Shown one piece after another: positions 1,628 to 18,634 of a stretch of DNA of 18,634 bases. The stretch's first letter is position 1. Every line of letters begins with the position of its first letter. The translations under genes were made by a program, and so were the position numbers. The stretch spans positions 1 to 18,634 of the forward strand of contig MTSL01000092.1 in NCBI GenBank assembly GCA_002794465.1. The letters run 5' to 3'. Below the pieces are notes generated by a model. That model made no database searches. It was not told the DNA's origin and saw only the letters and a list, made by a program, of their open reading frames with translations. Origin of the DNA: Paramicrosporidium saccamoebae KSL3 (taxonomy: Eukaryota > Fungi > Cryptomycota).

Positions 1628-2161
1628 GAACTGCTAATCAGTCTTTTATGTCACATAAAGACGCCATATGCTTGAACAACACTAACACACCCATCGAAAG
1701 ATCCTATATTAGAATCCCCAGCGAAGCAATTTGCATTTAATGGACGATAACCTTTATTTTAATCACTTGTATAAGAATCTGTTAAACAGTATCCACTTAT
1801 CATTGGCAAGTCCGACCCAGATAGCAGTCCCACAGGCCAGTTTGGTCATATTAAGAATGGCAGCCCATAAAGAAGCCATATACTTTAATAAGAGCAAGCT
1901 CACTCATCGGCGGAAAGAATTCGCCCTACGCTACCCTGGCCCGGAGTTATACCGAACTCTACAGCATTTCTGGAAAATGCCGTGCAGTAAAGTGAGAGTA
2001 ACAAACCTTTACTGGAAACCCCGGTCTGTTCTATGCTAAACCGTACAGCTACGTAAAGGCAGCATTAATGCGCGCCTAAATAATGTACCCAAGCTCGCTG
2101 CATTCATCCACTATTCCGTAATAGTCAAATGATGACCCCGACCAGGGTATAAGCCACTTTA

Positions 2162-2908
2162 ATGACTCAAGAGGTCTCCAAAGATGTATGATACACTGTT
2201 TGTATGGCTAATAGCTAGATTCTCCAGGCGTTTAGCGAAATTACTGCCGGCCTCAACCGTTTGGGAGCAGCACTCTCCATTCTGGTCTCGGCAACCATGA
2301 CCAAGTCCGTCGATGTTCCGGCGGCCATCAACCCCGTGTTGGACAAGGATTCTGCGACACCGGTCCTCATCACCGAATCAGCGCTCGTGACAGCACCAGC
2401 CACCCCAAAGGCCACCAAGTCTCCAAAGGCAGTGAGGGACCCCAATTTCCCGAAGCGTCCCCTGACCGCCTATCTTCTTTTCGCTCGTGAGCAACGCGAG
2501 ACGATTCAAAAAGAGCATCCCGAGTTTGGATTCCCCGAAGTTTCTCGTCTACTGGGACAGCGGTGGGAGAGTGTTGATAAGAAGAAATATGAGGAAGAGA
2601 ACCAAAAGCTGATGGAGAGTTATCGACGAGATGTGGAAGAGTATCAGAAGAGCAAAACACAGACTAGTGAAGCAGAACAGCCAACTACAGCTGTAAAGGT
2701 CCCCAAAAAGAACAAGAAGAAGGCTGCTGCTGAGACGGTGGGTGTCGCCGAAGCTGTGAATGCTACCGAGGCTGTGAGTGATCGTGCCGGCGATAAGAGT
2801 GTGATAGAGACCATCCCGACTCTTGCGTCATCTGAGGCGGATGTAGAGGCCGTAAAGCCTAAAAAGAAGAAGAACAAAAAGGCAAAGATTGCAGAGGTTG
2901 AAGCATAA
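2162..2908 (+). CDS. HMO1: Hmo1-like HMG-box chromatin protein, join(2162..2185,2219..2908), 237 aa
   Basis: HMG box RDPNFPKRPLTAYLLFAREQRETIQKEHPEFGFPEVSRLLGQRW...YRRDVEEY and Lys-rich tail KKKKNKKAK. Removing intron 2186-2218 gives the N-terminus MTQEVSKD|ILQAFSEITAGLNRLGAAL, which resembles the helical N-terminal part of yeast Hmo1. The HMG-box call is firm; Hmo1 orthology is from recall. Confidence 0.8.
2186..2218 (+). other. 33-nt spliceosomal intron, phase 0
   Basis: GTATGA...GCTAAT...CTAG. It contains an in-frame TGA, and its removal joins ATG 2162 in frame to the HMG ORF. Confidence 0.8.
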
Positions 2909-2945
2909 GTTGTTGTGTTTTGTGAGGCTAGTAATAAGACCCTTT

Positions 2946-3155
2946 ATTGGAATCCCTGGATTGTGGGTGTACTACCTCACACGTTTGTTCGAGTTTACTT
3001 TTTCAATAAAAATTCCATCCTAACCGTTGGTTACTCTAATTGAGGTTGCATTATTGGTTCCGCCTTGAGATTATCCAATCAGGATAAATCTTTCGAAAAA
3101 TGATTCGACCGACTATCCACGTCCAATAGCGTCAGCGAGTAATGGGTCATATAAG
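2946..3155 (+). promoter_or_regulatory. CCAAT-box cluster plus TATA-like element upstream of the 557-aa gene
   Basis: ATTGG at 2946 and 3053, CCAAT at 3075 and 3123, and TATAAG at 3150-3155, 25 nt before ATG 3181. Confidence 0.55.
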
Positions 3156-3180
3156 CGACGTCGATATGGAATAGGCCAGG

Positions 3181-4854
3181 ATGCATGGACTCGGGCTACT
3201 GATAGCATTGCCGCTAGCATTGGCACAGTATGACAGCAAGCCATCATACACGAGTAATGCAAATTATGGATCACAGCAACAAACCTACGGGTCATCACCA
3301 GTTGGAACACAATTTAATACTGGTGCATCCTCACTTGGAGTACCAAAGAGTAATACTTTACCGTCATTCGGAGTGTCATCAATTGGGGCGCAACCAAATT
3401 ATGGTCAACAAATAGGTGCTCAGGCAGCAGGTTTTGGGGGTCCCAATCAACAGAATGGGACGCCATACCCCGAGACCATGCATGGCCGAGGACAACAGAC
3501 GGGTGGTTGGCCGCAGTCAGCCTATGTACCCGGGTCGCCATCGCCAATGTTTCCCCAACCGACAGTCACAGCCCCACCACGTCCTCCGCCGCCCCCACCG
3601 CCACCGAACAAACAAACTGCGGAAGCGCGTCTCGCCTGGCTCGAGTATCTAACCAATGTATATATCCAATGCGAAGATTTTGGTCATGCGCGGAAACTCG
3701 TTGAGGAGATGTATGTGTGGTTAGTGCGCTATCCGAGATTACGTAAGGAAGTGAGTGAGGCAGTGCAGGTACTGCAACAACGCATGGATGCCAGTCGGGA
3801 ATGCAAGTGTAGTGGAGGTCGCTGTAGAGGAAACCAGCAGCCTCATCCGCCCAGGGAAATGATGCCAAAGGGGGACATGACTATGGAGGCAGAGCGAAAC
3901 CTCTATAAAATGATGGGTCACATCCATGCATCATCAAATATTGAGCTGGACTCGAGAGAGAAAGAGACTGTGGAGCAAGTACATCGGATCCTTGGATTAG
4001 GATACACGAGCAATGCAATACATGCGTTTCAGCAACTACGCTCTACAAATCCCACTTTGGTGGACACGGAAACGTATGGGAAGCTTGATTTTGTGCTCAA
4101 AATGGTGCGATTCGATTTGGAGAATCCCGATAATTGCATGCCATTGTGGAAGAGCGACTGTCAGACCAACTGGAGGCGCAAGAGCGATATTCTGGAAACT
4201 TATAATATGTTAAGGAGTACCCCTCCCCAACAGACTCAGTTGCGTGGCGTATTGTATCGGATCGCCCATCTGCCCAATCGTGAAGAGATCCTCACTCGAC
4301 TTTTGGTGGCGGTGGGACGAAATGAAGCTTGGCAGCGCACTCGGGGGCTAAACCGTGCAGATCGATATTTGGCCGAGGCCTGTCTGACCCTGCATGGATC
4401 ACCCCGACCGGGCCGGTTTGATGATGTCGCCACGTGGGAATTCCATATTAATCCCCTCGATGCACGCGCTCACGCCAAACAGATATACGAACGCTGTCTT
4501 CAAGACCACCGTTTGACATCATCTGCCCAATGTCGAGAGGCATTTGGTCAGATCAATGCGCTTGAACGGACCTGTCCCTATGGAGGGTTTGTGCGCATCG
4601 GAACCTTTTCTCTAATATTTGGCGATTATTTGTTTATCAAGTGCCTGGCACCTCCCATGCCGCCTCCGAGCTATTTTTTGCCTCCACGAGCACCGTCTGT
4701 GCCAAGAGATCGCTATCGGAGACGACTGCGGAGACTGTCGAGGCTGCTGCACAGTCTGACTGAACACTTACAAGATGTGGGTGAATATGCCAATACACGC
4801 CGACTACCGGGTCATGAACACATATTAAGTGCAATACGAAACGAATTAGACTGA
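3181..4854 (+). CDS. Predicted secreted protein, 557 aa: signal peptide, G/Q/S/P low-complexity region, polyproline tract, helical domain shared with the 1352-aa protein
   Basis: Long intact ORF. The N-terminus MHGLGLLIALPLALA|QYD looks like a signal peptide, and PPRPPPPPPPP lies at 3574-3606. No family recognised. Confidence 0.85.
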   Translation: MHGLGLLIALPLALAQYDSKPSYTSNANYGSQQQTYGSSPVGTQFNTGASSLGVPKSNTLPSFGVSSIGAQPNYGQQIGAQAAGFGGPNQQNGTPYPETMHGRGQQTGGWPQSAYVPGSPSPMFPQPTVTAPPRPPPPPPPPNKQTAEARLAWLEYLTNVYIQCEDFGHARKLVEEMYVWLVRYPRLRKEVSEAVQVLQQRMDASRECKCSGGRCRGNQQPHPPREMMPKGDMTMEAERNLYKMMGHIHASSNIELDSREKETVEQVHRILGLGYTSNAIHAFQQLRSTNPTLVDTETYGKLDFVLKMVRFDLENPDNCMPLWKSDCQTNWRRKSDILETYNMLRSTPPQQTQLRGVLYRIAHLPNREEILTRLLVAVGRNEAWQRTRGLNRADRYLAEACLTLHGSPRPGRFDDVATWEFHINPLDARAHAKQIYERCLQDHRLTSSAQCREAFGQINALERTCPYGGFVRIGTFSLIFGDYLFIKCLAPPMPPPSYFLPPRAPSVPRDRYRRRLRRLSRLLHSLTEHLQDVGEYANTRRLPGHEHILSAIRNELD

Positions 4855-4983
4855 GATATTATTTATAAATGTATTCTTGTGAGATTGCTGATGATGCATG
4901 AGGGGGGGGGTAACTCGCGTTTAGAGAAAAATTGCTGCGCTGTACAGTGAAGTGAAGTAAAGAGATCATCATAGTGTCGCGTA

Positions 4984-5156
4984 GTGGGGATAATACCACG
5001 GACTTTGTCAAGCGGGAAGAGAACCCGTTCATTTTTAATCCAATGGCCCTTTTATAGTCTCCCAAGTGGCATAGGAATAATCCTCAAGTACTCAGCAAAT
5101 CGATCCATTCTAGCACACAAAGATGTTTTCTCCAAACTGGGGAACTACTTCCAAAA
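4984..5156. repeat. Bipartite dispersed element, copy 2 (block A 4984-5022, block B 5128-5156)
   Basis: The first 27 nt of block A are identical to copy 1, and block B matches at 26/29. The spacer is unrelated to that of copy 1. Confidence 0.9.
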
Positions 5157-5197
5157 AACATGGCAAACAATCCACCACATCACATCTTTATTGAATA

Positions 5198-6028
5198 TTA
5201 AACTGGTATAGCGCAGTCTTTCGGGTCATGTTTAACGGAATTAACAAGCGAGGTGTAGAATTCATTTGACAAATACCGTGGTGGCACGATCCAGGAGCGT
5301 TTTTCGTAGTGATCAAACATTACTCTATTGTGTATTGTCAAGAAGAGCTCGCCTTCTGGTCCCTCCAGGACACAGGTTAACACACCGAAAAAGCTCCGTG
5401 TACACGCATTTCCATCCAGAAACATTGTGTCCTCCCACATCCAAGATCCTCCAAAGCGCATGCGCATTGCGAAAACTTTTACCCCTAGAGCATACCCCAT
5501 CAAGAAGAATGCAATTGTGCCAATGCCGAGAAAGTAACCGGCACTTAGAAGTGCAGCTAGCAATACGAGGGGGATGGCGTCGGTGGACAGAACAATGAGC
5601 CATCCCAGCCACTTGCTATATTCTCGCTCGCGACCAAGAAACACAAATCGTTTCTGTAGGCAGTGCACTTCATCATTCTTATGATAATATCCAAGGACCA
5701 ATACTCTGGGCATCTCCCAAACCGAGAATAAAAATCCGAAATGCTTCCAGTCATGGAGGCCTTCGGCCGCGAGCTGCCCATCGGGACGAAATTTGGCGAC
5801 CACGAAGGAGCGGATGCTGAAGCGCTTGATAATCCAGAAGAGAAAATCGTGCGAAATCAAGCCCACCCAGATGAAGGCGTACATGGTCCAGCCCCAGAAT
5901 GGATAGCATATATTGACGATTGTCCACGCCATGAGCAACAATAAAAACGCATCGATAGTAACGCTGAGACACTTTACCAGTTTTGGGCCAAATGTGCTTC
6001 CCTTAGAGAGTCTAAACGTGAGATACAT
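5198..6028 (-). CDS. Membrane protein, 276 aa, about 4 TM, arranged as two (2 TM + soluble domain) units
   Basis: Two hydrophobic hairpins (VTIDAFLLLL...FLFWII and LSTDAIPLVLL...ALGVKVF), each followed by a soluble segment. The start context agcaATG matches that of 13677. Confidence 0.75.
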   Translation of the reverse strand: MYLTFRLSKGSTFGPKLVKCLSVTIDAFLLLLMAWTIVNICYPFWGWTMYAFIWVGLISHDFLFWIIKRFSIRSFVVAKFRPDGQLAAEGLHDWKHFGFLFSVWEMPRVLVLGYYHKNDEVHCLQKRFVFLGREREYSKWLGWLIVLSTDAIPLVLLAALLSAGYFLGIGTIAFFLMGYALGVKVFAMRMRFGGSWMWEDTMFLDGNACTRSFFGVLTCVLEGPEGELFLTIHNRVMFDHYEKRSWIVPPRYLSNEFYTSLVNSVKHDPKDCAIPV

Positions 6029-6132
6029 TGCTGAGCGGAGAAGTGAGAGTCGGCTCGCATTTGTTACTGTTCAATAGGGGGTGACCCCTAGGCGATGATT
6101 TGTGGGATAGCTTAATTTGGAACAGAGTGGTA

Positions 6133-6415
6133 ATTGGTCAACCGACGGATCTGCCCCGTGGTAGCCCGATCCACTACGCTCAAGTAGCAGTAAACCTTAT
6201 TTGCAATCATCCTCAAATAAGAGCATCTGCCGTATGCTTTAAATTTAATAAGAAAACTCGATTCTCGTGCGTAGATTTTTGTGACACTGCGGGGTATTTT
6301 ACAATTCCGTACCGATTAGCCGTGAAATCTGATTGGAGGAATTTCTTGCCTCCAATCAGTGACAGTCGTTCGACGACGAACAAATGTCTGGACCTGATGG
6401 CGCCGCTCTGATTGG
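6133..6415. promoter_or_regulatory. CCAAT-box cluster in the divergent promoter region
   Basis: ATTGG at 6133, 6332 and 6411; CCAAT at 6352. Confidence 0.5.
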
Positions 6416-6456
6416 ATGGGAATCTTGGATAAGGTCGCCACGGACCGGAATTCAGC

Positions 6457-9400
6457 ATGTTCCGCATGCTGTGCCAACTACTTTTGATATGGCTGGGAAT
6501 GTCGCTGGCCTCGCCACGACACCCGCTGCCAAAATCAAATTTGCAGTCATTCAGCAAATTATCGATTCCGTCAGGCAGATTGGCCGACGATGACTTGGCA
6601 CTGGCTGATACGCCGTTCCGCGAATATGTCGACTATGCCACGTGGACGCAGTATTTAGCCAAGCAGCTGGTAGCCACCGGGGATGTGGCACGACTGTCAT
6701 CAGCAATCAACCGCCTGCAGGCCCTAAACAGCCGTCTCCGGGGGGCGGACGCCGTCTCAGGGACCCAGGCGATAAAGCGTCTTACCCAGGATCTCTATGA
6801 GCTGCGCATCCGATCAGCCAGTCATCACATGAAGTTTGACCCAAAAGCAGAAGAGGTGTACGACCTAATTGAGCACGGCCATTATAACATTGCCAAAGAA
6901 ATGCTACGCAACATTCTCCACCAAATGGATTACATCAAACTAAGTGCATCGTTAAAGAATGTTGTGATTTTGGAAGGACTAATCCAGTATGATGGGCTAA
7001 ATCCCAAGGCTGTACTGTCTATATGGGAGAACATGTGGAATTTGAGCCAGGATGACAAGGTCTCTGCCCTCATCCGCGCCAAGCAACTATGCTCTGCAAC
7101 TCGCTCAGCCGTGGCAGATCCGCACCATCAGAAAGGCTACCGATGCATTTCCCGAACAAACAATATAGACGCTCGAGTTCTCGTTAACCTTGGACAGGAC
7201 GTGACCAAGCAGTTGGGCGAGCCATACATAAGAGACGATCCTGTAGAGCATCGTCTACTGCAGATGGGAATGGCATATATGAACACGGACTATTGTGCTG
7301 CTCAAACGCATATCCGTACGGCATTGCATATGGCCACTGATCAATTGCGCCGGAAAGAGTTGGAGAGAATCGAAAAACGACTTGGAGAGCAGTGCGTCCG
7401 GAAGCAGTTGGATTCGACATATCGCATGTTCTGTCAGGTTGGTCATGAGGCAGCCTTCCCCATAGGAGAGGCCACTGTCACTAATCCCGTGTCTTCCGTT
7501 GTTGCAACGGCAGAACGTACCTTTTGGACACGTATTGCCATTGGCGATTGCATTTCCGCTCGCAGTGATTTGGAGGCCGTCCGTCGTATTGTGCCAACCA
7601 ATATTATCCACCGTCGCGACTATCTCATCAGTCGCATGGAGTTTATGGAAAGTAGGCTGCGCAAATGTCAGCAAGCTCCCGGTCTCTACGCCAATGGATT
7701 TGGACAACGCATTATGGCATTGCTGCAAAATCGCAATTATCAGGGAGCCTATTGGGTGTGGCAGCAGAACCGAAATCACCCCACTGCTGTAGTATGGCGT
7801 ACTGCCATCCTAGTAGCCCGTTATCCAAAGGTCATTTATGCTCCTTGTACTGGAAACAGTCTTGTCACTGGAGTTCCCAACATGGATCGACAACTATTCG
7901 ATCGATTGGAGGCCCTAATGACTGGTCGAAAGTCGAGTTCATGCGTCCATGAGACTGATAAGGAGCTTTGCAACCTCATTTGGATGCGTGCTGCCTATGT
8001 TACTGGAAGACATCGACTTGTACATCATTACGCGAGACAAATCAGCCGCAGTGCAAAATACTGCGACGAGGCTAACCAGCTAATGGCGTGTCAGTTGCTC
8101 TGTTTCAGTGGTCGCGGCTACTCAGAGGCATGTTCCTCCTTATCAAATTATCAAAGTATGAGCCAACAGGTCCGTTCTGCTCCCCACAATGCCATTGGAC
8201 TAGATCTCGCCACTCGACTCTGTCGCTCTTCAAAGCAAATTGTCTTGGATCCGTTTTACATACGGAATGGCCCTACTCCGCGTCCATTAACCTTTCTCTT
8301 CCGACACTATTTTAAACGCTTTCTGTACGATGGGCAAAGGTCTCTCTTTTCTCCTAAAACCAAGATTCATCCCAGCATGCTCGCTTCTCAGTTGAATGGA
8401 AAAAATACTGTACCCTATTCTAGTCCATCCATTAACTATGCAACTCAAAACTCGCAGACCCCGCAGAACTCGCAGAACCGCCCTCCAGGATTCAATACTA
8501 TCACTCACTATGATCAGAACATGCAACCAATCACGGCGACAACGGCCATTTATGGCAATTCTCATCAATCGTCGCCCATTTCTGCGCTGGGTTCCAACCA
8601 AAAGCTTGTCAAGGGCGGTTGGGATCACTATATGGGACATCAGCGCCATCTCGGCAGTTATCAAAACATTAATGCTCCCCAGATAACTGACCAACAGCGA
8701 CGTGCATTGCTACAGGCTCAGGAGCTTTTGTGTCCATGTTTGGCCAAACACAAGGGACTTATGTTCCAGTGTCGACCAGGCCGAGCCGGTGATCGATGCA
8801 GAGCAGCGAAGAGAAGGTTTATGCAGTCATATCAGAGGAAGAATATGAAAAAGGTTTGTAGCAAGCCCAAATGCAGAATAGTGAAAACGAAATGCAAAAA
8901 GGGCGATAAGAAATGCAAATCAACCCGCCGTGTATGCAGCAAGCCCCAGTGTCGACTCATCCCTAAGCATAATAACAAACGGACAAGCAAGGTCTGTGAA
9001 AAACCCAAATGCAAAATGGTCAAGGTTAAATGCAAAAAGGGCGATAAAAAGTGCAAATCGACAAAACGGGTATGCAGCAAACCCAAGTGCCGATCTGTTA
9101 ATGCCGCTGGAAACGCAAAGACTCGAAGAGTTTGTGAAAAGCCCAAGTGCAGGACGGTCAAGGTCAAATGCAAAAAGGGTGATAAAAAGTGCAAGCCGAC
9201 CAAGCGTGTATGCGGTAAGCCCAAGTGTAGATTGGTTCCCGTTACTGGAAATGCAGGGACACGAAGAGTTTGCGAAAAACCCAAATGTCGGACGATCAAG
9301 GTGAAATGTAAAAAGGGCGATAAAAAGTGCAAACCAACTAAACGTGTCTGCAGCAAGCCCAAGTGCAGGATGATCAAAGTCAAAGGCAAAAAGCAATGCA

Positions 9401-10515
9401 AGTCAACCAAACGCGTTTGCAGCAAGCCCAAGTGTAAGGTTGTCAAGGTCAAGTGCAAAAAGGACGACAAGAAATGTAAGCCAACCAAACGCGTCTGTAG
9501 CAAGCCAAAGTGTAAAATGGTCAATGCGGGCCAGTCATGTTCTACAAACACGGCGCCAGGATCGGCCGGAAGCCGGCTGTTTGGAGAAAAGCTGCTAGGT
9601 AATTGTGATGAAGGAGTGAAGCACGCTTACAAAGCCTTCCTGAAACGCACCGGAAGCTGCGATTGCAAGCCGTGCAACAGCAAAGCCTCGGAAAAGTTCC
9701 TTGTAGACAGCCATGCGTTAGAGGTTGCGGCCAAAATGTTTGCCTCTGGCCAATTGCAATGTCCATGTCTCAAGAAGAGTCTTCTTAAAAAGTATGGAAT
9801 CAACTTTGACAAACTCCAAACCGTGAACATTAGGAAAAGTGGCAACTGTACTTGTAAATGCACACGCAAAAACAAAATTGATCCCTTAAAGGAATGGCGT
9901 CTCCAGAAATTCTGCGAGCGAAAGGGCATCAGAAACGGCAGGAATTGTCAGCTATATAGCAAGAAGCTTATGGAAAAGCACATGAAAAAGCTCCGTTTGC
10001 GTCGTGCTAAACTCCGTGCTACATTAAGAGCAAGGATATTAAAGACGGAACGCTGTCGGGCTCATTACCAAAAGCTCGTCAAAGCGCATGTCCAAAAATG
10101 TCGTGCCCAGGAGAAAAAGAGGATGCAAGCAGTGCGTGCTGAGCAGCAGCGCACAATCCGTATGGCTAAAAAACACGAGGCGCTTGCCAGGAAACACATG
10201 ATAATCCAGAAAAAGTGTCTGGCGGGAATGAGGGCACGAATTGCCAAGATTCAGAAATGTGGCTGCCGCAGGAGGTACCAGAGGAGACAAGTAGTTCCGA
10301 GGAGAAGGATCTGCCGCAAAAAGCAATGTAGACGCCGGGCACTGCGAAGAAAGAAATGTGCCCGAGGACGCCAATGTCGTCGACGAATGTTACAACGCAA
10401 TGCTTTCAGACGATCCCTTTATCGCAACAATCCGGCGCTGTTGAGATATCGCAGACCCTTTAATATCTCGCACTACAAACCTATGTATGGACATCCGAAC
10501 AATGCGCATATATAA
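6457..10515 (+). CDS. Large predicted secreted protein, 1352 aa: signal peptide, helical-repeat-like N-terminal half, Q/N/S linker, Cys/Lys repeat array, Arg/Lys/Cys-rich tail
   Basis: 4-kb intact ORF starting MFRMLCQLLLIWLGMSLA|SPR. No family recognised. Confidence 0.9.
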   Translation: MFRMLCQLLLIWLGMSLASPRHPLPKSNLQSFSKLSIPSGRLADDDLALADTPFREYVDYATWTQYLAKQLVATGDVARLSSAINRLQALNSRLRGADAVSGTQAIKRLTQDLYELRIRSASHHMKFDPKAEEVYDLIEHGHYNIAKEMLRNILHQMDYIKLSASLKNVVILEGLIQYDGLNPKAVLSIWENMWNLSQDDKVSALIRAKQLCSATRSAVADPHHQKGYRCISRTNNIDARVLVNLGQDVTKQLGEPYIRDDPVEHRLLQMGMAYMNTDYCAAQTHIRTALHMATDQLRRKELERIEKRLGEQCVRKQLDSTYRMFCQVGHEAAFPIGEATVTNPVSSVVATAERTFWTRIAIGDCISARSDLEAVRRIVPTNIIHRRDYLISRMEFMESRLRKCQQAPGLYANGFGQRIMALLQNRNYQGAYWVWQQNRNHPTAVVWRTAILVARYPKVIYAPCTGNSLVTGVPNMDRQLFDRLEALMTGRKSSSCVHETDKELCNLIWMRAAYVTGRHRLVHHYARQISRSAKYCDEANQLMACQLLCFSGRGYSEACSSLSNYQSMSQQVRSAPHNAIGLDLATRLCRSSKQIVLDPFYIRNGPTPRPLTFLFRHYFKRFLYDGQRSLFSPKTKIHPSMLASQLNGKNTVPYSSPSINYATQNSQTPQNSQNRPPGFNTITHYDQNMQPITATTAIYGNSHQSSPISALGSNQKLVKGGWDHYMGHQRHLGSYQNINAPQITDQQRRALLQAQELLCPCLAKHKGLMFQCRPGRAGDRCRAAKRRFMQSYQRKNMKKVCSKPKCRIVKTKCKKGDKKCKSTRRVCSKPQCRLIPKHNNKRTSKVCEKPKCKMVKVKCKKGDKKCKSTKRVCSKPKCRSVNAAGNAKTRRVCEKPKCRTVKVKCKKGDKKCKPTKRVCGKPKCRLVPVTGNAGTRRVCEKPKCRTIKVKCKKGDKKCKPTKRVCSKPKCRMIKVKGKKQCKSTKRVCSKPKCKVVKVKCKKDDKKCKPTKRVCSKPKCKMVNAGQSCSTNTAPGSAGSRLFGEKLLGNCDEGVKHAYKAFLKRTGSCDCKPCNSKASEKFLVDSHALEVAAKMFASGQLQCPCLKKSLLKKYGINFDKLQTVNIRKSGNCTCKCTRKNKIDPLKEWRLQKFCERKGIRNGRNCQLYSKKLMEKHMKKLRLRRAKLRATLRARILKTERCRAHYQKLVKAHVQKCRAQEKKRMQAVRAEQQRTIRMAKKHEALARKHMIIQKKCLAGMRARIAKIQKCGCRRRYQRRQVVPRRRICRKKQCRRRALRRKKCARGRQCRRRMLQRNAFRRSLYRNNPALLRYRRPFNISHYKPMYGHPNNAHI
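8854..9540 (+). repeat. Coding tandem array of ten VCxKPxC units alternating 26 aa and 20 aa (46 aa / 138 bp higher-order period)
   Basis: The long unit is e.g. VCEKPKCRTVKVKCKKGDKKCKPTKR and the short unit e.g. VCSKPKCRSVNAAGNAKTRR. One unit is 23 aa and the last is partial. Confidence 0.95.
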
Positions 10516-10516
10516 A

Positions 10517-10586
10517 GACTAACACGTACTAACATGTAATAATACGTAATAACATTTGCCAATATTTACTAACATCTACTAACACT
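10517..10586 (+). repeat. Degenerate 10-bp tandem array with TACTAAC core, immediately after the stop codon
   Basis: In-phase units: gactaacacg, tactaacatg, taataatacg, taataacatt, (tgccaatatt), tactaacatc, tactaacact. Confidence 0.75.
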
Positions 10587-10719
10587 AAACACTGGATGCT
10601 AGACACTATTTATCAAACATAAAGCCTAGCCCTCGCATTAAAACTATGAATATGTATACGGGCTAGGGATTTCAATAGTCATAATTTTAACTTTAAGCTC
10701 GCATGAATTTTGTTGTATG

Positions 10720-10792
10720 ATTGGAGCAAAACTTGTCCAATGGAATTCCGGGTGCAGCATTGTCATTGGATGTTGACATTTGGGACGCCAAT
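10720..10792 (+). promoter_or_regulatory. CCAAT-box cluster upstream of the 225-aa gene
   Basis: ATTGG at 10720 and 10765; CCAAT at 10737 and 10788. Confidence 0.55.
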
Positions 10793-10823
10793 AAATCAGT
10801 CATTGCCATTGCAGCTGTCAGCC

Positions 10824-11501
10824 ATGAAAGTACTCGCCATACTTCCACTTTGCCTTTCCACAGTATACTGTTCCACTTCCGGCAGTAATCCACTCTCGGC
10901 GCAACCCAGCAATCTCCCGCCAAATCAAAATGCTTACGATTTAGACGCTCGTTTTGGTGCCCCCGACAGTGATTCTCTCGCCATCGATCGTCTTCGCCAG
11001 AAAGGAAAACAACTTCTCTCTTCATGTCGGACGCCCCGTCATCCCGAAGATACTCGCTTTGAGCGCGAAATAACCAAGATGCGTTCAATGATCCAAAAGA
11101 ATGCACATGAAGAGCGCAACTGCAGCCATAAATGGAGAGGCATGATGCCAGCAAGTCTGGTGAGAGCCTATTTGCATTACCTAGAATGGCAAGATAAATG
11201 GCTAGGAAAGCTGATGGGACGTCTCCAGGGCTCATCATGTAAAGGGAGCGCTGCCTTGGTTAGGGAACCGCCCAAGTATCAAGAAATTTTACGACGAGAT
11301 GGAATGCAGGTAAAGCGCAGGACAGTGCGTAGACGAGGTGCTGTCCGTGGGAAACTTGTCCGTCGTGTAGTACGCGTAAAAAGGACATCTGGAGGAAGCT
11401 ACTCATCTGGCGGATCCAGCTACAGTACATCCGGTGGTTCAGCTAGCGGCTCAGCTAGCATGTCTACTGGTGGTTCCGTAAGGGGAAACCCACGCATGTA
11501 G
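10824..11501 (+). CDS. Predicted secreted protein, 225 aa, with an Arg-rich tract and a G/S-rich tail
   Basis: The first in-frame ATG followed by a signal peptide is at 10824 (MKVLAILPLCLSTVYC|STS). The protein contains VKRRTVRRRGAVRGKLVRRVVRVKR followed by SGGSYSSGGSS. Confidence 0.8.
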   Translation: MKVLAILPLCLSTVYCSTSGSNPLSAQPSNLPPNQNAYDLDARFGAPDSDSLAIDRLRQKGKQLLSSCRTPRHPEDTRFEREITKMRSMIQKNAHEERNCSHKWRGMMPASLVRAYLHYLEWQDKWLGKLMGRLQGSSCKGSAALVREPPKYQEILRRDGMQVKRRTVRRRGAVRGKLVRRVVRVKRTSGGSYSSGGSSYSTSGGSASGSASMSTGGSVRGNPRM

Positions 11502-12066
11502 GCAGCCTTGTAAGATAAAGTATTTATTTTGATTTGATTCAGTCGCATAGTGAGGTAAGTACTATAGTCTCTGCCGAATGGGATGATTTTGCATTTCTAA
11601 AATTAAACTTTTAAAGAACAAGAACAATCACGGATACAGCCAAATGTAGACTTGTTCCTCCACGTAAGTGTTTAGCTAATCATTCTATTAGTCTGCAGTA
11701 TGGTACTTGTTTGTGTGATGCAAATCTACTCATAATGACTTTATTAGCAGCGCCCTTTAATAGAGCCATCCTTTGGAAGTCTCAAAGTTCCGTGTCGTGC
11801 ATGGTCGAGATCACAAGCAATGTATATCACACTGATAGTTTTGATCGGCTTTCGATTCTCCAAATCCTCACCTCACTTTACGGTTAGAGTCGCTCTTGGG
11901 TTTGCTATATACCACCCCACCGGCTGATATTCTACACTCAAATCAAATTCAAACCCCGCTTAAACACGATTATAAAGTTTTTTGTAAGACTTTAATTATT
12001 TGCACGATTGGGCTGATTTGAGGCAAAGGGTTTACTATGGCCTTTATGTTCTTGAGTACTAATCCT

Positions 12067-13316
12067 CTATATCTTTATGCCTGCTACTTTTATTACTAAC
12101 ACGTCTGGCATCTTTGCCGCCGGTCTCTGCGTCTGCATTAGCGTTAGTGACATCATTATTGCTAACACAAACACAGAGACCGACGGTAAAAGTGACAAAC
12201 GCAGTGATAATAAGCAATCCGAGTGCGTTAATCCGCGGCCCATCGTGCGATATCGGCAGGTCTCGCATTTCCTAGCCCGCGAGTTGATGTGCCACAATGC
12301 CTCCTCTGCCTTTTGAAGGGCCTTCCCTTTATTGGCAGGCCGGAATCCACACAACCGGCATTCTGCATGGTCCCCCTTCAGGTACCAGCGCTCCAGCCGG
12401 GGCCCGCTGGATTGCTCGGGTACTGGGCTGGGGGGACTACTCTCCAGAGACTCTGAGATTTTGTCTTCTAGATTTGAAGGAGAATCATCCTTCTTGGGGG
12501 GCTTTGGCAGATGGGCCTCCACCCAGGGATCTGCGGCATGTACAGCAATTATTGCTCTACACAGCTCCTGCCCCACTTCGCGGCCTACGCGCCCAAGAGC
12601 CAGTAATGTGAGGTCCCGTTTTAGTTCGGGACTAAGCACATCATGGGACCAGATGTACTCGACTGCAGCGAGTATCTCAGCCTCACTCGTCCCACTGCAC
12701 TGTTTGAGCACGATGGCACACTCGACAAACCACCGGCGATAATCGGCGGCTTGGGTTGGCTCAACAAAAAGCAACAGCGCGGCCTTCTTGCCAAAGCTTC
12801 CCACGTTGTTGAGCTTTAGCCCGTGGAGGCATTCACGTTTGAAGTCTTCTAGGCCGAGCTTGGAACACTTGTCCCATGAGCTCCAGGGGGAGCTCACGAA
12901 TCAGTGATTCGTCTATTCCTCGGTAATTCTTGATGGCAATCTACAAAAATAAGCAATCTTGAATTATGGCAAACTTTCAATGCTTGGTTAAAAGTTACCG
13001 CCGCATCCCATGACCCTTCGGGATGCATCTCTTTCAACATTCCATCGAGCTGGGTCTGCTGACGATGCTTGCACGTGAGACAGCCCCACAGCGCTCCAAG
13101 GGCGACCAGCACTAAAGCCGCTCCAATCCCGAAAGACCAAAGAGCCCCATCCGTTGCAGCAACCGGCCCACAGAACAGCACCACGAGACAGGACATGAAT
13201 CCCAGAATGCTCAGCCATCCGCCCCTCTCTTGTACACTTACCACACCAGCAATGAGGGCCCCCAGCCCAGTCGCACAAGCACAGATCAGAGCAAAGACAA
13301 TGGCAATGACATTCAT
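12067..13316 (-). CDS. Probable single spliced gene, complement(join(12067..12848,12898..12940,12999..13316)), 380 aa: 3-TM N-terminus, helical region, Cys/His putative Zn-binding motif
   Basis: ORF 12894-13316 gives three hydrophobic helices. ORF 12067-12897 has no ATG start and carries CRLC...H...CETC. Two GT-AG introns (58 nt and 49 nt) join the two in frame. The exon structure is inferred. Confidence 0.5.
12089..12214. repeat. 126-bp ungapped degenerate palindrome (fold-back)
   Basis: Position i pairs with 24303-i. Of 62 positions, 43 are Watson-Crick, 16 differ by transitions and 3 by transversions. Confidence 0.9.
12849..12897 (-). other. Candidate 49-nt intron, phase 1
   Basis: GTGAGC...CCTAG; the 3n+1 length restores the frame into ORF 12067-12897. 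The branch site is weak (GCTCAT) and two AAG would have to be skipped. Confidence 0.35.
12941..12998 (-). other. Candidate 58-nt intron, phase 0
   Basis: GTAACT...GCTTAT TTTTGTAG, AT-rich relative to the flanking coding sequence. Confidence 0.6.
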
Positions 13317-13349
13317 GCAGTATCTGCTGACCCGTGGTCGAGGCCGAGG

Positions 13350-13357
13350 TATTTATA
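13350..13357 (-). promoter_or_regulatory. TATA box
   Basis: TATAAATA on the minus strand, 33 nt before ATG 13316. Confidence 0.6.
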
Positions 13358-13430
13358 GAAAGAAATTCATGCAGTATCCATGCAATGCGGGCTAGAGTTG
13401 GAGTAGCTACAAATACAATTAAGCTCATAA

Positions 13431-13595
13431 CCAATAGCTTAATATTAAATGCCAATACCTATTATAGTTTGGTTTAGCTCTAGGGGCACTGATTGGTCGT
13501 GCTTGACTTTAATCGTCCAGCCAATCATCCCACTGCTTTACAATTCAAATATGCGCAACGTCCAATAACATTCACTGAATCACTAGTCCTATTGG
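13431..13595. promoter_or_regulatory. Six CCAAT boxes in the divergent promoter region
   Basis: CCAAT at 13431, 13452, 13521 and 13562; ATTGG at 13492 and 13591. Confidence 0.6.
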
Positions 13596-13676
13596 ACACG
13601 GCCAGGGCGATACCAGTGAAATCCGATATACAAGACCACTACCTCATCACTCACTAGAGCCAAACTGACAGGAGCA

Positions 13677-15509
13677 ATGAAGCTGCTAATATTGCCACTT
13701 CTTTCATTGTCATTTTGCTGGGCCTGTACCCAGGGTCAACGGAGGGCGCTCCGACCACCACCGCCATTTAATATCCGATCGGGTGTAATCCGCGAACTTA
13801 CCGATGACGGAAACTCGGACGATGAGCAGATGAACCAGCCGGCCAAAATGGCCCGTGATGCTACCAAAATTGTGGAACGCTTTGGCAGCTGTCATGACAA
13901 AAAGCGTCACAAGTGTCTATGGTACAAAATGCAAGTGCATACAAAACATTCAGGGGATCCACCAGCCCCACGGATGCCTTGTAAGGAGAGGATGCAGGCT
14001 ACAATGAGATCTATGGATTGGCGCAGATGGATAAATACGGCTGCGTCGCCTGAGGATCGGCGGACGTTCTGGCGGTATTCCGGCAGAGCCCGTGGGGTCC
14101 ATGGTCAAGAAAAGTGGGACAGAACTTCTCAATCAGGACAGGATAGCTCGTATGGTTGGAAAACAATGGCTGGGCAGAGCCGAGGCGGCCAAAGAAATGA
14201 GTGGCTCAGGCAGTCTCTCCCCGAGCAAAAGTTGAACCGAGCCTCTTCCAACTACCAGACTGCTGGTGGTCAAAAAGTGATTAAGCAAGCAATTGACAGC
14301 CAGAACTTTGAAAAGTTTATGCGGTATTTGAAACGGAAAATGGCTAGCCACACAACCACTACAGGCAGTCAAAAAAAAGAGGGAGGATCGTACCTGGACA
14401 GAAATCTCCAACAGGACGATCCACAATTTATAGAGTACATGAAAAAACGCTTTTACCTCTTGAAGAATGCGCAGAAATATATTCGCGGAATGAAAAAAAA
14501 GATGCATGGTATGCTTAAGCTTCACCAAGAGCACGACTGCAAGGAACAAACCAAGGCAATCTCTGGAGGCAGCAAGAAATTGATAGCACACATTGACAAG
14601 TTACTACGCACCCATCGATCCCAAACACGTCGTGTCCATCAGAAACATTGTCGTGGCGTCATTGTGCATTTCTTGCACGATGTGGATAGAGTTCTAAATC
14701 ATATGCAAAAGAAACAGTCGTCTTATGAGGACATGATGAAGACCTGGCTTCAGCTGAGCTATCAGCAAAAGCAGGAGCTATATCGGATACTGTTGGCAAA
14801 CCAAATGCGCGATATGCATCGTGTGCTCCGGTTACGCAATCTCGAGGTTTGGTATTCTAAAAAGGTGCATCTCCTCGACCTCCAAACTCGCCAAAGACTG
14901 CAACAGATTATCCGGGCCCTAAAATTGCAGGAGCAACAGTTTCAGGATGCTCTTTGGGAGCGTCTGAAGCACCTGCAGCAGAGTGCTGACGAGTGGACAA
15001 AACATGAGGCAACCTACAAAAGGGTTCTTTTAGAAATGAGTAGGCAGCAGAAATTGTTGATGGAAATGAATCTTAAACAGAGTCAACAGATCCAGCGTCT
15101 CTCTGAATTTACGCAAAACATTCCAACTCGGTGTGGAATGATGGGTGGATCCGTGGGAGAAGCATCAGTAGGTAGATCTATGGGAGCAATGTCAATGAAT
15201 GGGTCCATGGGATCGACATCAATGGGCAGATCCACGAGACTGGAGCCAGCAACATCAACGGGCGATCAAGATGAATGTAATGATTACATCTTGCCTCCAG
15301 CAGCGGAACGTCGCCAAAATGCAATTGTGAAACAGTTAAAGCAGCTAAAGATCCGTCGCCATGGTGCACTTCGCTCCAAAATGTGCGCAATTCGATCCAT
15401 TGGCAAAACCCTGGCAAAACCGCTAAATGACGACGACAAGAAAGTCTCTGCCAAACGTAGGACCAAGAAGACTAGAAAGACAAGGAAGAAGAAACATTCC
15501 CTCTTCTAG
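13677..15509 (+). CDS. Predicted secreted basic protein, 610 aa, coiled-coil-like, with an M/G/S-rich segment and a polybasic C-terminus
   Basis: Starts MKLLILPLLSLSFCWA|C. It has a Q/L/K/R-rich helical middle and ends KKVSAKRRTKKTRKTRKKKHSLF. Confidence 0.85.
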   Translation: MKLLILPLLSLSFCWACTQGQRRALRPPPPFNIRSGVIRELTDDGNSDDEQMNQPAKMARDATKIVERFGSCHDKKRHKCLWYKMQVHTKHSGDPPAPRMPCKERMQATMRSMDWRRWINTAASPEDRRTFWRYSGRARGVHGQEKWDRTSQSGQDSSYGWKTMAGQSRGGQRNEWLRQSLPEQKLNRASSNYQTAGGQKVIKQAIDSQNFEKFMRYLKRKMASHTTTTGSQKKEGGSYLDRNLQQDDPQFIEYMKKRFYLLKNAQKYIRGMKKKMHGMLKLHQEHDCKEQTKAISGGSKKLIAHIDKLLRTHRSQTRRVHQKHCRGVIVHFLHDVDRVLNHMQKKQSSYEDMMKTWLQLSYQQKQELYRILLANQMRDMHRVLRLRNLEVWYSKKVHLLDLQTRQRLQQIIRALKLQEQQFQDALWERLKHLQQSADEWTKHEATYKRVLLEMSRQQKLLMEMNLKQSQQIQRLSEFTQNIPTRCGMMGGSVGEASVGRSMGAMSMNGSMGSTSMGRSTRLEPATSTGDQDECNDYILPPAAERRQNAIVKQLKQLKIRRHGALRSKMCAIRSIGKTLAKPLNDDDKKVSAKRRTKKTRKTRKKKHSLF

Positions 15510-15662
15510 ATAATTGTGTATAAACTATCCAAACATTTTATATTGATCTGCGTTACCATTAACTTGATAGTCTTAGAGGCATAGGTTTGTACAATTGGGG
15601 AGTGATTGAGGCCAAAGGTGCTCCGGGACCAAGTCTACACCTGCCCCTACTCGTCTGCCGTA

Positions 15663-18509
15663 CTATGCGGCAGGATGTGATTGACGCTGTTTTAGTTTGG
15701 CTTTGGCATCGTTTATCTTGTTAAAGTCCCCGATCCGCTTCTCGAGCTGTTTCAAAAATGACAAATGTGCCATTGGCCGTAAGGCAGGCATTTTGTCAGG
15801 ATGAATGCCCAAGAACATTCTGATAACGAGATCTACAATCGCCGTCTTTGTGTCCGGTGTCCGGCCTCCAAACTGTTTGTCTACCTTTCCGAGCAGCTGG
15901 GCCTCTAGGTTTGTGTCGTATTGGAGGATAATCTTTACGTAATCGCCCTGTTGGTTTCGACCATAACCCTTTGAGTATCTATAGGGCTTTTCCAACAAAT
16001 GGCGATACACACTTGTAAGGAATTGGTTTGGCTCACTAGTATGGTGGCTCTCAGGAAGCGTAGCAAGGTCTGGTTGGGTAGAGGCAAGATATATCCCATA
16101 CACCATGGGCGACACCTTCCCATCAATCCACTGCCGGATAGCCATCTTGTCGCGATGTTCGCCACACAATATTGCCATGTCAAGCAACGAATGCAGATTC
16201 TTGTCAAGTAGAATTTTGTAATTTTCACGGAATAGACCAAGAAGACTCTGTGCCATGTCCATCTGGTTCTTGCGTTCCTTGCCACCTCTGAAATACAAAT
16301 TTCGGTTAGAGTGCCTATTATGTTCCTTCATAATGCGCCCAGAGATTAGCGATTTTTTGACGACAATGTTTAGAGCCTCGGCAAATTTTTCCATGTTCAT
16401 AAATTTATCTCTAATTGATGCCATGTTGCATACGACATTACAATCGCGAAAAGCAAGACGAAAGAAGATGCAATTCAACTCTTGTTTTGGCTGGATGAGA
16501 CTCTGATTCTCATTAAGGACTTCAAGAACATCCACGGCTTCCTTGGGATTGATTTTCGCCAAGGAATAGTACATTTCTGCAAAGTAGTCCAAATCCTTGT
16601 AAAAGCTGACTCCCAGCATTTTATCGGCATAGAATGAGTCGAAACGCTCATCTTGAAATAGCATTGCCGAAAATGACCCAGATATGAACGGAGAATCTAC
16701 GAGCTTGACAATGTCGCTCATGTGGGAGTCTTCTAGCTCGTAATTCCCGAGACGTCGGAGCAAAATGTACAATGCGCCTTCACTAGATGCCGCTACGGCT
16801 TGCTGGATTAGACCCACATACTCCTCACAATCAAAACTATCGACTAGAAGCTTTTTAAATTCGCGATACTCACCCATGTTGATATGTGTGAATGAGGGAA
16901 GCTGGACCAGCTTGATGGTTTGCGCAGTGGCCTCGCCAAATTGCTTCTCTTCCTGAGGCGTCTTGAAGAGTGACGTTACCCTCCTGATTGCACGACTTAT
17001 CCCTGTGATCATTTTGGCAAACTTGTCTGTAATGGAAGAGTACATTTTCCCAAAGAATCCCGAGACCTGGATCCCAGCGTAAGAGTTAAAGATAATGTTT
17101 CTAAAATCAAGCGCATCCAGAAGATTCACAACTGTGGTGAATACCGGAATGACGGCGCCCATCCCAGTGAGCTGAAGGGAGGCCAATGTGAGGATAAACA
17201 TCCAGGTGCTAATTCCGTAAGGATCGTTCTTCAGTTTGGAGGCAATGCTCATTAGCCCACCAACGTTCCCCACAGAAAAGAATGCAATGTGGGAGGTTGT
17301 TGTTGCAGCAAGTACGCTCCCTTGCATCGCGGCGTTAATGGTCGCCGTGGCTTGAGGAAGCGATTTTTGCAGCGAATAGAGCGAAGTGAACAAAGATACT
17401 GCTTTCTCGATATTACGAGTCTTGAGATTTACAGAAGCACCAACGGCTGTTTGGATCGCTGGCTGGTCAGAGACAACCGGAGCCAGTGACTGCGTGTTGG
17501 GCGTAGACGCTGCACTGCTTATAGGATACAGCGTCTGTACAGCCAAAGAGCTCCCATGCACCTGCGTTCCTTGGGTTTCCTGCTCAGGAGTATCCAGTTG
17601 TTCATAATCCTCCTCCTGCCGTCTGTCCAGCTCCACGTTCCTACTCATTTGCTCTCCTGCATCCCTTTGGTCTGCCAGGAGTTGTGCACGGTATTCTCTT
17701 TCTTTTTGCTGCTCAACTAAAAGACGCTGTGCTTCCAGCGCGTGCCGTCGTCTTTGCAATCCAGCTGCTTCTTGCTGAGTAAGACCCTGTGACTGGGCAT
17801 AGTTTGGCGTTTCAGTATTTCTCTGTATTGGATCTGTTTGCTGATACCGTCTCTGCGTTTGGGTTGTTTGTTGGTACTGTCTCTGCATTTGAGCTGCTTG
17901 TTGCTGAGCAAGACGTTGTGCCTCGGCAGATCTTTGTTCTTCAGCACGCCTCTGCATCTCTATTGCATGCATTTGAGTTGCTTGGTGCTGAGCAAGACGC
18001 TGTGCTTCGGCATATTTCTGTGCTTCAGCATTCCTTTGAGCTTGAGCTGCTTGTTGAAACTGTCTCTGCGTTTCCATCGCACGCATTTGAGCCGCTTGTT
18101 GATCAGCAAAATGCTTCTCTTCAGAACGTCTCTGCATTTCCATTGCACGCATTTGGGCCTCGGGGTTCAAAGTCATTGGTGGTGAATTTCCACGTTTTGC
18201 CTGAAGTAGTGCCTGTGCCTCCTGTGCTTGCGCCTTCTGGGCCTCTTTTTGGCGTTCTATCATCTGCTTGTGTGACATTGTCGGTGCAGAATACCTTGTG
18301 CCAGATACTTGAGACTGTTGGACTGTACCTGGTCTTGGCTGGATAATCATCGGCTGTTGTACCATCTGCGGGACAGAGGTAGAACTAGTGGGATGTGATA
18401 CCGTATGCCTCCATGTGTCAATAATCCTGGTCCTTCCGCCAGTTCCGGGTACATTGGCTGTAGAGATAGCCTCGAGTAGACAAATTACAACTAACGCTAC
18501 CGCTTTCAT
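15663..18509 (-). CDS. Predicted secreted protein, 948 aa: Q/A-rich repeats, hydrophobic helical segment, helical C-terminal domain
   Basis: 2.8-kb intact ORF starting MKAVALVVICLLEAISTA|NV. No family recognised. Confidence 0.88.
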   Translation of the reverse strand: MKAVALVVICLLEAISTANVPGTGGRTRIIDTWRHTVSHPTSSTSVPQMVQQPMIIQPRPGTVQQSQVSGTRYSAPTMSHKQMIERQKEAQKAQAQEAQALLQAKRGNSPPMTLNPEAQMRAMEMQRRSEEKHFADQQAAQMRAMETQRQFQQAAQAQRNAEAQKYAEAQRLAQHQATQMHAIEMQRRAEEQRSAEAQRLAQQQAAQMQRQYQQTTQTQRRYQQTDPIQRNTETPNYAQSQGLTQQEAAGLQRRRHALEAQRLLVEQQKEREYRAQLLADQRDAGEQMSRNVELDRRQEEDYEQLDTPEQETQGTQVHGSSLAVQTLYPISSAASTPNTQSLAPVVSDQPAIQTAVGASVNLKTRNIEKAVSLFTSLYSLQKSLPQATATINAAMQGSVLAATTTSHIAFFSVGNVGGLMSIASKLKNDPYGISTWMFILTLASLQLTGMGAVIPVFTTVVNLLDALDFRNIIFNSYAGIQVSGFFGKMYSSITDKFAKMITGISRAIRRVTSLFKTPQEEKQFGEATAQTIKLVQLPSFTHINMGEYREFKKLLVDSFDCEEYVGLIQQAVAASSEGALYILLRRLGNYELEDSHMSDIVKLVDSPFISGSFSAMLFQDERFDSFYADKMLGVSFYKDLDYFAEMYYSLAKINPKEAVDVLEVLNENQSLIQPKQELNCIFFRLAFRDCNVVCNMASIRDKFMNMEKFAEALNIVVKKSLISGRIMKEHNRHSNRNLYFRGGKERKNQMDMAQSLLGLFRENYKILLDKNLHSLLDMAILCGEHRDKMAIRQWIDGKVSPMVYGIYLASTQPDLATLPESHHTSEPNQFLTSVYRHLLEKPYRYSKGYGRNQQGDYVKIILQYDTNLEAQLLGKVDKQFGGRTPDTKTAIVDLVIRMFLGIHPDKMPALRPMAHLSFLKQLEKRIGDFNKINDAKAKLKQRQSHPAA
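17830..18165 (-). repeat. Coding Q/A-rich imperfect repeats (AQMRAMEMQR and AEAQRLAQQQAAQM types)
   Basis: AQMRAMEMQRR, AAQMRAMETQRQ, ATQMHAIEMQRR and AEAQRLAQ (twice). The repeats are also visible in the DNA (gctgagcaagacg twice; tctgcatttc/tctgcgtttc). Confidence 0.85.
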
Positions 18510-18634
18510 CCCCTAGACTGCCCCGTCAATCTCAAAGAGGACGATTTAATACCGAGGCCAAATCTAATTGGTGGAATTAAATAAACAAGTGGTCATATTG
18601 ACAAGCATATCTGATTGGTAGAATAAAGCCCAGC

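Follow-up and report, generated by a model that had tools for sequence, protein, structure and literature searches.

Five neighboring genes of Paramicrosporidium saccamoebae, each encoding a basic protein with a predicted signal peptide and without a recognizable family, lie on contig MTSL01000092.1 (assembly GCA_002794465.1), the whole of which, 18,634 bp, constitutes the window analyzed here. The reading we rank first, tentatively and at somewhat less than even probability, is that these genes form a co-regulated cluster whose basic, disulfide-bonded products are structural components of the spore wall or polar filament, resembling microsporidian polar tube proteins (PTPs) and spore wall proteins (SWPs) in design but unrelated to them in sequence. 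P. saccamoebae (genome MTSL00000000) belongs to the Rozellomycota and lives as a parasite inside the nuclei of Saccamoeba; its spores carry a polar filament and a spore wall (PMC5701793). A preliminary description of this DNA had guessed at a microsporidia-like parasite with a compact genome, and the identity of the organism, a bearer of polar filaments, agrees with that guess. The five genes, named here by the length of their products in amino acids (aa), are as follows.

3181-4854, forward strand: 557-aa putative secreted protein (deposited model)
6457-10515, forward strand: 1352-aa putative secreted protein (open frame; deposited model 6499-10331, 1258 aa)
10824-11501, forward strand: 225-aa putative secreted protein (unspliced open reading frame; deposited model 10824-11887, 290 aa)
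13677-15509, forward strand: 610-aa putative secreted protein (deposited model)
15663-18509, reverse strand: 948-aa protein with a predicted signal peptide (deposited model)

Putative secreted proteins of no recognized family

Signal peptides were scored by a heuristic of our own, based on the n-region, the hydrophobic core and the residues at -3/-1. In each of the five N-termini a short n-region leads into a hydrophobic core of 10-15 uncharged residues (mean Kyte-Doolittle 2.0-3.5), and the -3/-1 positions are occupied by small residues. The predicted signal peptide is MHGLGLLIALPLALA, followed by Q, in the 557-aa protein; in the other four cluster proteins it is MFRMLCQLLLIWLGMSLA followed by S, MKVLAILPLCLSTVYC followed by S, MKLLILPLLSLSFCWA followed by C, and MKAVALVVICLLEAISTA followed by N. 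The prediction is kept in almost all orthologues from environmental relatives, and the same heuristic found no hydrophobic N-terminal core in the neighboring VWA and HMG proteins. Judged in this way, the 557-, 1352-, 225- and 610-aa proteins show the classical secretory pattern with no downstream transmembrane (TM) segment, and a search of these four for endoplasmic reticulum (ER) retention signals and for hydrophobic C-termini of the glycosylphosphatidylinositol (GPI) type returned none. All five proteins are basic, with isoelectric points (pI) of 9.2-10.7. The preliminary description counted seven genes from 3181 onward, five of them starting like signal peptides. Core, -3/-1 residues and conservation uphold the five, but of the other two one is a 276-aa open reading frame (ORF) missing from the deposited annotation and one a TM-rich 360-aa gene, and neither is conserved in relatives. 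The clustering of signal peptides is by itself only mildly improbable genome-wide, with about 0.7 such windows expected per 3750-gene genome at a 10% background, so the case for a unit rests on synteny, paralogy and promoters.

Two of the deposited gene models call for revision. The model of the 1352-aa gene begins at Met15 (6499), by which the hydrophobic core of the signal peptide is lost, and it splices out a 56-nt "intron" at 10160-10215 although the frame stays open for about 100 more codons. Because all orthologues start with a signal-peptide-like sequence, the ATG at 6457 is supported as the start, and secretome predictions from the deposited proteome would therefore miss this protein. 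For the 225-aa gene, the deposited spliced 3' extension (to 11887) finds no support from orthologues.

None of the five proteins matched Pfam (E <= 0.1, beyond noise) or NCBIfam, nor did members of the 948-aa family, and PDB sequence profile searches with all five families returned only noise (E >= 0.04), in agreement with the earlier remark that no family could be recognized. Relatives are nonetheless available in environmental sequence. A search of 5.8 billion proteins found eight metagenomic relatives of the 557-aa protein, at 30-57% identity, and the N-terminal 640 aa of the 1352-aa protein have three, at about 42% identity. An exhaustive HMMER search of 1.8 billion representatives found six for the 948-aa protein, at 24-34% identity and over aa 331-941 only; a word-indexed search had returned none, probably because Q/A-rich words swamped its candidate list. 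These wide searches, made with the 557-aa protein, the N-domain of the 1352-aa protein and the 948-aa protein, included no microsporidian or named protein among their hits. For the 225-aa and 610-aa families the comparison covered Pfam, NCBIfam, PDB sequences and the contigs of relatives read here. Metagenome scans with the 1352-aa family and with P0022 gave no confirmed loci, and we found no paper on these genes, on the P. saccamoebae secretome, or on assembly GCA_047514055.1, the source of one of the relatives described below. One sequence, P0002, a 113-aa fragment on a 1-kb metagenome contig from the Joint Genome Institute, matches the 557-aa protein at 90% identity or more and therefore indicates P. 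saccamoebae or a very close relative in an environmental sample.

The smaller members of the cluster combine conserved domains with strongly biased regions. The 225-aa protein (pI 10.7) consists of the signal peptide, a conserved domain of about 100 aa (motifs PED..F..EI and YL.YLEWQD.WL), an Arg-rich stretch and a Ser/Gly-rich tail whose length varies in the family; the tail region contains 18% R, 17% S and 16% G, and orthologues occur in loci L003, L004 and L010. In the 610-aa protein (pI 10.3; orthologues in L003 and L004), the signal peptide is followed by a conserved acidic motif with two cysteines (DDGNSDDE..GSC.DK..H.CLWYK), a conserved helical region rich in Q, K and L (aa 236-463), and a Lys/Arg tail that is basic in the orthologue too. 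Behind its signal peptide the 948-aa protein carries Gln/Ala-rich repeats at aa 61-330 (Q 22%, A 14%) and a conserved C-terminal domain of about 500 aa, within aa ~331-941. Its family has a TM-like hydrophobic segment at a conserved alignment column (about aa 438), and the protein is for this reason probably membrane-anchored; P0016, P0019 and P0021 match the same architecture, P0019 with four TM-like segments. A single-sequence AlphaFold2 model of the C-terminal domain was unusable, with a predicted local distance difference test (pLDDT) score of 36. A convergent gene stands next to the 610-aa orthologue at the end of L003 and shows no likeness to the 948-aa protein. The 948-aa gene was thus not found beside the 610-aa orthologue in that relative, and its membership in the cluster is argued from its signal peptide and two CCAAT boxes only.

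A shared domain and a conserved gene order

The two remaining proteins, encoded by adjacent genes, share more than their predicted secretion. In the 557-aa protein (pI 9.2, Pro 9% overall), a signal peptide (aa 1-15) is followed by a P/G/S/Q-rich region at aa 17-147 (P 18%, G 14%, S 11%, Q 11%) that closes with a poly-Pro run, a conserved domain at aa 148-490 (W153 to C488) with seven invariant cysteines, and an Arg/Pro-rich tail. The 1352-aa protein (pI 10.3) is larger and more extreme, with 72 Cys, 11% K overall, and 288 K+R against 87 D+E. Its signal peptide (aa 1-18) precedes a conserved all-alpha domain at aa ~54-618 (F54 to Y618) with twelve invariant cysteines, after which come an S/Q/N-rich linker, Lys/Cys repeats, a conserved region with CPC motifs (aa ~1050-1140) and an Arg-rich tail (R 23%). 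Region by region, the composition of the five proteins agrees with the Pro/Gly/Gln, Lys/Cys, Arg and Gln/Ala richness listed in the preliminary description.

Comparison of the 557-aa and 1352-aa families by hhalign gave a probability of 81% (E = 1.2e-5) over 185 columns, with motifs in the same order: WLEYL/WTQYL, then G-Y-x-x-A, then FDLENPDNCMPLW/IQYDGxNPKAVLPLW, and finally RLLVAxGR/ARVLxNLG. From the profile match and the shared motif order we conclude that the adjacent genes are ancient tandem duplicates, whose families share what is, by prediction, a new all-alpha domain in which several cysteines are invariant. A wider paralogy that would embrace the whole set of five was considered and rejected: blastp found none, and in hhalign every family pair other than this one scored below 1% probability. 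An AlphaFold2 model of the 557-aa domain, built from a nine-sequence alignment, is all-alpha with 18 helices, a predicted template modeling score of 0.66 and a core pLDDT of 80-90. Foldseek comparison of the model with PDB and BFVD returned only generic TPR, armadillo and solenoid structures (E ~1, template modeling score ~0.2) and no specific neighbor.

The Lys/Cys repeats of the 1352-aa protein (aa 776-1040, window 8782-9576; K 28%, C 12%) form an array of ten alternating 26- and 20-aa units with six KGD motifs. The 26-aa units have Cys at every seventh residue, beside alternating V-K-V-K, and the array may be a disulfide-laddered rod. It is found only in the species of the window. Orthologues carry other repeats at the same position, G/H-rich in L003, H/K/R-rich in L004 and NPMMNGM in L009, so that this central slot differs in each lineage; the low-complexity and repeat regions are replaced wholesale between lineages. 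In L009, a relative with 58% GC (NCBI assembly GCA_047514055.1) whose contig is interrupted by stretches of N and carries a frameshifted 557-aa homologue, the region past the conserved N-domain is a separate ORF (7062-9734, forward strand) with long Asn/Pro/Met repeats. In L011, the closest relative (557-aa protein 60% identical), the gene beside the 557-aa homologue (2543-4420, forward strand) is 28% identical to the 1352-aa N-domain, lacks the long repeat tail, and represents either an orthologue that evolves fast or another paralogue.

The preliminary description proposed a check of synteny in related genomes, and the order 557-1352-225-610 is indeed kept in L003 and L004, which represent divergent uncultured relatives. 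The conserved block, all on one strand, also includes the HMG gene upstream of the 557-aa gene. Partial order is kept on L005, L006-8, L009, L010, L011, L012 and L014, as far as the contigs reach. Between lineages the conserved domains of the cluster are 35-45% identical, against 36-40% for the HMG neighbor; with divergence so similar, the cluster does not look like a set of effectors caught in an arms race.

CCAAT promoters and neighboring features

In the window, the five 5' spacers contain CCAAT/ATTGG at 11-17 per kb, whereas 2.1 per kb would be expected and coding DNA reaches 2.5 per kb; this bears out the CCAAT-rich upstream regions reported earlier. The convergent 3' spacers are low in the same pentamer. 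The promoters are listed below.

2909-3180, forward strand: promoter of the 557-aa gene, 4 boxes (2946, 3053, 3075, 3123), 14.7 per kb
6107-6456, forward strand: promoter of the 1352-aa gene, 4 boxes, including ATTGG at 6411
10516-10823, forward strand: promoter of the 225-aa gene, 5 boxes, 16 per kb
13317-13676, both strands: bidirectional promoter of the 360-aa and 610-aa genes, 6 CCAAT/ATTGG boxes, 16.7 per kb
18510-18634, reverse strand: partial promoter of the 948-aa gene, to the contig end, 2 boxes in 125 nt

The first two boxes of the 1352-aa promoter form an inverted repeat at 6329-6359, CTGATTGGAGG (6329-6339) and CCTCCAATCAG (6349-6359) separated by nine bases. Three boxes of this promoter recur in the same order and orientation in L004, in DNA that is otherwise unalignable. 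Across seven loci, the 21 regions that precede cluster genes contain CCAAT/ATTGG 75 times, against 11.6 +/- 3.5 in shuffled sequence (maximum 24 in 2000 shuffles), and CCAAT ranks first in enrichment among the 512 strand-collapsed 5-mers. With four loci added, 27 cluster promoters contain 97 boxes in 7.4 kb, or 13.1 per kb, while HMG-type control promoters from six lineages contain two in 1.5 kb, or 1.3 per kb (conditional binomial p = 2.4e-6); these controls amount to roughly one gene, HMG in the six lineages, and its divergent neighbor. A supposed 238-aa gene in L009 was dropped as a further control, being the frameshifted C-terminus of the 557-aa homologue.

Most boxes lie 40-300 bp 5' of the start codon; they occur in either orientation, and their spacing is often 20-30 bp. 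Their flanks fit CCAAT[C/A/G]R, with a purine at the second base after the box in 93% of sites and CCAATCAG frequent, in agreement with the NF-Y/HAP consensus. The cluster promoters thus have in common with NF-Y/HAP2-3-5 promoters the CCAAT pentamer, the 3' flank [C/A/G]R, and several copies in both orientations; by core, flanks and over-representation they are predicted to be of the NF-Y/HAP type. A 10-mer tandem repeat (ACTAACATGT-like, about 6.7 copies) lies within the promoter of the 225-aa gene at 10518-10584, three bases past the stop codon of the 1352-aa gene, and contains ACTAAC, which resembles the fungal branch-point motif.

The other features of the window are as follows.

34-999, forward strand: 321-aa protein with a VWA-like C-terminus (deposited model)
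1199-1271, reverse strand: tRNA-Ala(AGC) (Rfam)
2129-2908, forward strand: HMG-box protein (deposited model)
5198-6028, reverse strand: 276-aa ORF with four TM-like segments, a doubtful gene (ORF only)
12059-13316, reverse strand: 360-aa gene, TM-rich at the N-terminus (deposited model)

The tRNA was the sole match in an Rfam scan of the window. A CAATC repeat at 1421-1442 places three tandem CCAAT boxes about 150 bp upstream of it and some 700 bp before the HMG gene, and the proximal 300 bp of the HMG promoter contain none. The VWA-like domain at the start of the contig has the motif DNSRSM (DxSxS pattern), and the ORF probably represents the 3' part of a large gene of the midasin type. Its synteny extends to L005-L007 and L014, in which the frame upstream continues past the contig end. 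The 276-aa ORF sits within an unusually long spacer of 1.6 kb, has no counterpart in relatives, and may be an unannotated lineage-specific membrane protein or no gene at all. The 360-aa gene, with three N-terminal TM segments, lies between the 225-aa and 610-aa genes and is transcribed divergently from the latter. It has no counterpart between the 225-aa and 610-aa orthologues in L003 and L004, the interval being only about 300 bp in L003, and looks like a lineage-specific insertion within the cluster.

Possible roles and comparison with known systems

Conserved order, tandem paralogy and promoters with multiple CCAAT boxes unlike that of the HMG gene lend partial support to the earlier proposal of a co-regulated cluster of secreted proteins. 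Placement in the spore wall or polar filament is ranked first because of a design shared with polar tube proteins: secretory, stabilized by cysteines, basic and of low complexity. In the mechanism we propose, several NF-Y/HAP-type CCAAT boxes per promoter would switch the genes on jointly, probably at spore formation. Signal peptides would direct the products to the ER, and there the all-alpha domains could form disulfides through their invariant cysteines; the seven and twelve invariant cysteines of the paralogous domains suggest proteins typical of the oxidized secretory pathway. The basic low-complexity and repeat parts (P/G/Q region, Lys/Cys array, Ser/Gly and Arg tails) might then space or cross-link the components of an assembled matrix, or bind polyanions in it. 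The 948-aa member is probably anchored in a membrane. Secretion, disulfides, co-expression, the timing of expression and location in the spore are all features that we infer from sequence.

Several observations weigh against placement in the spore wall or filament. Across the databases searched for each family, the proteins show no sequence likeness, and the 557-aa model no structural likeness, to any PTP, SWP or protein of known function. Synteny extends to the VWA and HMG genes as well, which means that gene order neither sets the secreted genes apart nor in itself establishes a functional cluster, and with so few control promoters the CCAAT boxes could be common to many promoters of the clade. 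A later review has P. saccamoebae entering its host by phagocytosis, which makes the role of the polar filament unclear. Extreme basicity, finally, would fit nucleic-acid binding in the host nucleus too. This last point, together with the parasite's life within the nucleus, makes a serious rival of the proposal, on balance an unlikely one, that the proteins are host-directed, nucleomodulin-like effectors, secreted into the amoeba nucleoplasm by the vegetative stage, with Lys/Arg-rich regions that bind host chromatin or RNA and fast-changing repeats that reflect host adaptation. All five proteins have the required charge, the imbalance being greatest in the counts of the 1352-aa protein given above; their Arg/Lys tails resemble nuclear localization signals or nucleic-acid-binding regions and keep that character in orthologues; the central repeats are wholly replaced between lineages; and all the families are orphans limited to this clade. 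However, the many invariant cysteines suggest disulfide-bonded folds that would be unstable in a reducing nucleoplasm, Pfam detected neither a known DNA-binding domain nor an AT-hook or the like, the conserved domains have not outpaced the adjacent HMG protein in divergence, and the genes are single-copy and syntenic, unlike expanded effector families.

Less likely again is that the proteins belong to a surface coat, the plasma membrane or the secretory pathway (meront glycocalyx, an uptake adhesin, or ER/Golgi residents), with CCAAT boxes marking strong expression. The conserved TM-like segment of the 948-aa family and the four of P0019 point this way, as do the multiple TM segments of both non-conserved neighbors, Ser/Gly/Thr-rich tails that would fit O-glycosylated surface proteins, the small number of promoter controls, and phagocytic entry, which makes an uptake ligand on the spore surface plausible. 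The four core proteins, on the other hand, lack ER-retention signals and GPI-type hydrophobic C-termini by the search described above, and large size, abundant Cys and low-complexity repeats are more characteristic of proteins that form a matrix or wall. That there is no functional unit at all, and that unrelated orphans lie together by chance, in a genome syntenic throughout and a clade whose promoters are CCAAT-rich in general, appears improbable. Such an account can draw on the 0.7 windows expected per genome, on the synteny of the VWA and HMG neighbors, and on the lack of any relationship among three of the five families, but it leaves unexplained the tandem paralogy of the 557-aa and 1352-aa genes, a tenfold difference in CCAAT density from the neighboring HMG promoter that is repeated in six lineages, and signal peptides predicted in almost all orthologues.

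The four to five neighboring orphan genes are the best available, though unproven, candidates for spore-wall or polar-filament proteins of P. saccamoebae, an early-diverging microsporidian relative. The environmental orthologues of two new protein families, one of them the Cys-rich all-alpha domain, provide a marker set for the Paramicrosporidium clade, and the promoter signature, several copies of CCAAT[C/A/G]R within 300 bp of the start codon, could retrieve the rest of the putative regulon. A bolder form of the spore-wall and polar-filament reading, which we regard as doubtful, is that the genes encode both polar-filament and spore-wall proteins of the earliest-branching lineage with polar filaments, under an NF-Y-type CCAAT sporulation regulon. 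If so, with neither sequence nor fold in common with PTP1-7, the invasion apparatus would have swapped all its building blocks or arisen more than once.

Known systems offer parallels for more than one of these readings. The TashAT family of Theileria comprises clustered, secreted proteins targeted to the host nucleus, with signal peptides and basic regions that resemble nucleic-acid-binding regions. It shares with the present cluster neighboring genes for signal peptides, basic regions, and a parasite directly exposed to the contents of the host nucleus or cytoplasm; it differs in that the cluster has no detected AT-hooks or further DNA-binding domains, many invariant cysteines, and single-copy syntenic genes. 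Closer to a structural role are the microsporidian spore wall proteins SWP1 and SWP2 and EnP1, in which a signal peptide and an N-terminal domain with conserved cysteines precede a species-specific, repetitive C-terminal region that is Gly/Ser-rich or basic; basic motifs in this group bind host glycosaminoglycans. The likeness of the cluster to these proteins is by description only, the database searches having given no sequence similarity.

Hidden Markov models (HMMs) of microsporidian polar filament proteins found 0 matches in the predicted P. saccamoebae proteome, the origin of its filament being left open, and the same search was negative for Mitosporidium (PMC5701793). PTP1, PTP2 and PTP7 are recovered only from extracts made with a reducing agent; PTP2 combines a conserved Cys-containing domain with a divergent Gly/Ser or repeat extension; and ptp1-ptp2 and ptp4-ptp5 are gene clusters, with PTP4 and PTP5 about 20% similar (PMC10229552). 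The preliminary description set the Pro-rich and Lys/Cys-rich proteins of the window beside PTP1 and PTP2, a parallel that fails as an identity. PTP1 is located in the polar tube, is O-mannosylated, and goes into solution only with reducing agents. PTP1 is acidic and strongly Pro-rich (32% Pro and pI 4.6 in A. algerae; PMC10229552), whereas the 557-aa protein is basic and reaches 18% Pro only in aa 17-147; neither the search of 5.8 billion proteins nor the genome paper's PTP HMMs (PMC5701793) gave it any likeness to PTP1. The 1352-aa protein is, like PTP2, basic and Lys-rich (most of all in its array) with a predicted signal peptide, but PTP2 has eight conserved cysteines in its Lys-rich region, while here the Lys/Cys array is species-specific, missing from orthologues, and the twelve invariant cysteines lie in an unrelated all-alpha domain. 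The N-domain search, Pfam, PDB and the same HMMs (PMC5701793) revealed no likeness to PTP2. In several lineages the 1352-aa gene adjoins the 557-aa gene, as ptp2 adjoins ptp1, and this neighbor is its own paralogue, not a demonstrated PTP1. Both cluster members are also much larger than PTPs. What the cluster has in common with microsporidian PTPs is signal peptides, Pro-rich or Lys-rich composition, conserved cysteines, a conserved Cys-containing domain with a divergent extension rich in Gly/Ser, paired genes and high divergence between species, so that by analogy its products may work like PTPs without being members of the PTP1 or PTP2 families. The cluster is thus of a known kind, a set of lineage-specific secreted proteins in a microsporidia-like parasite; its protein families, and the all-alpha domain that two of them share, are new.

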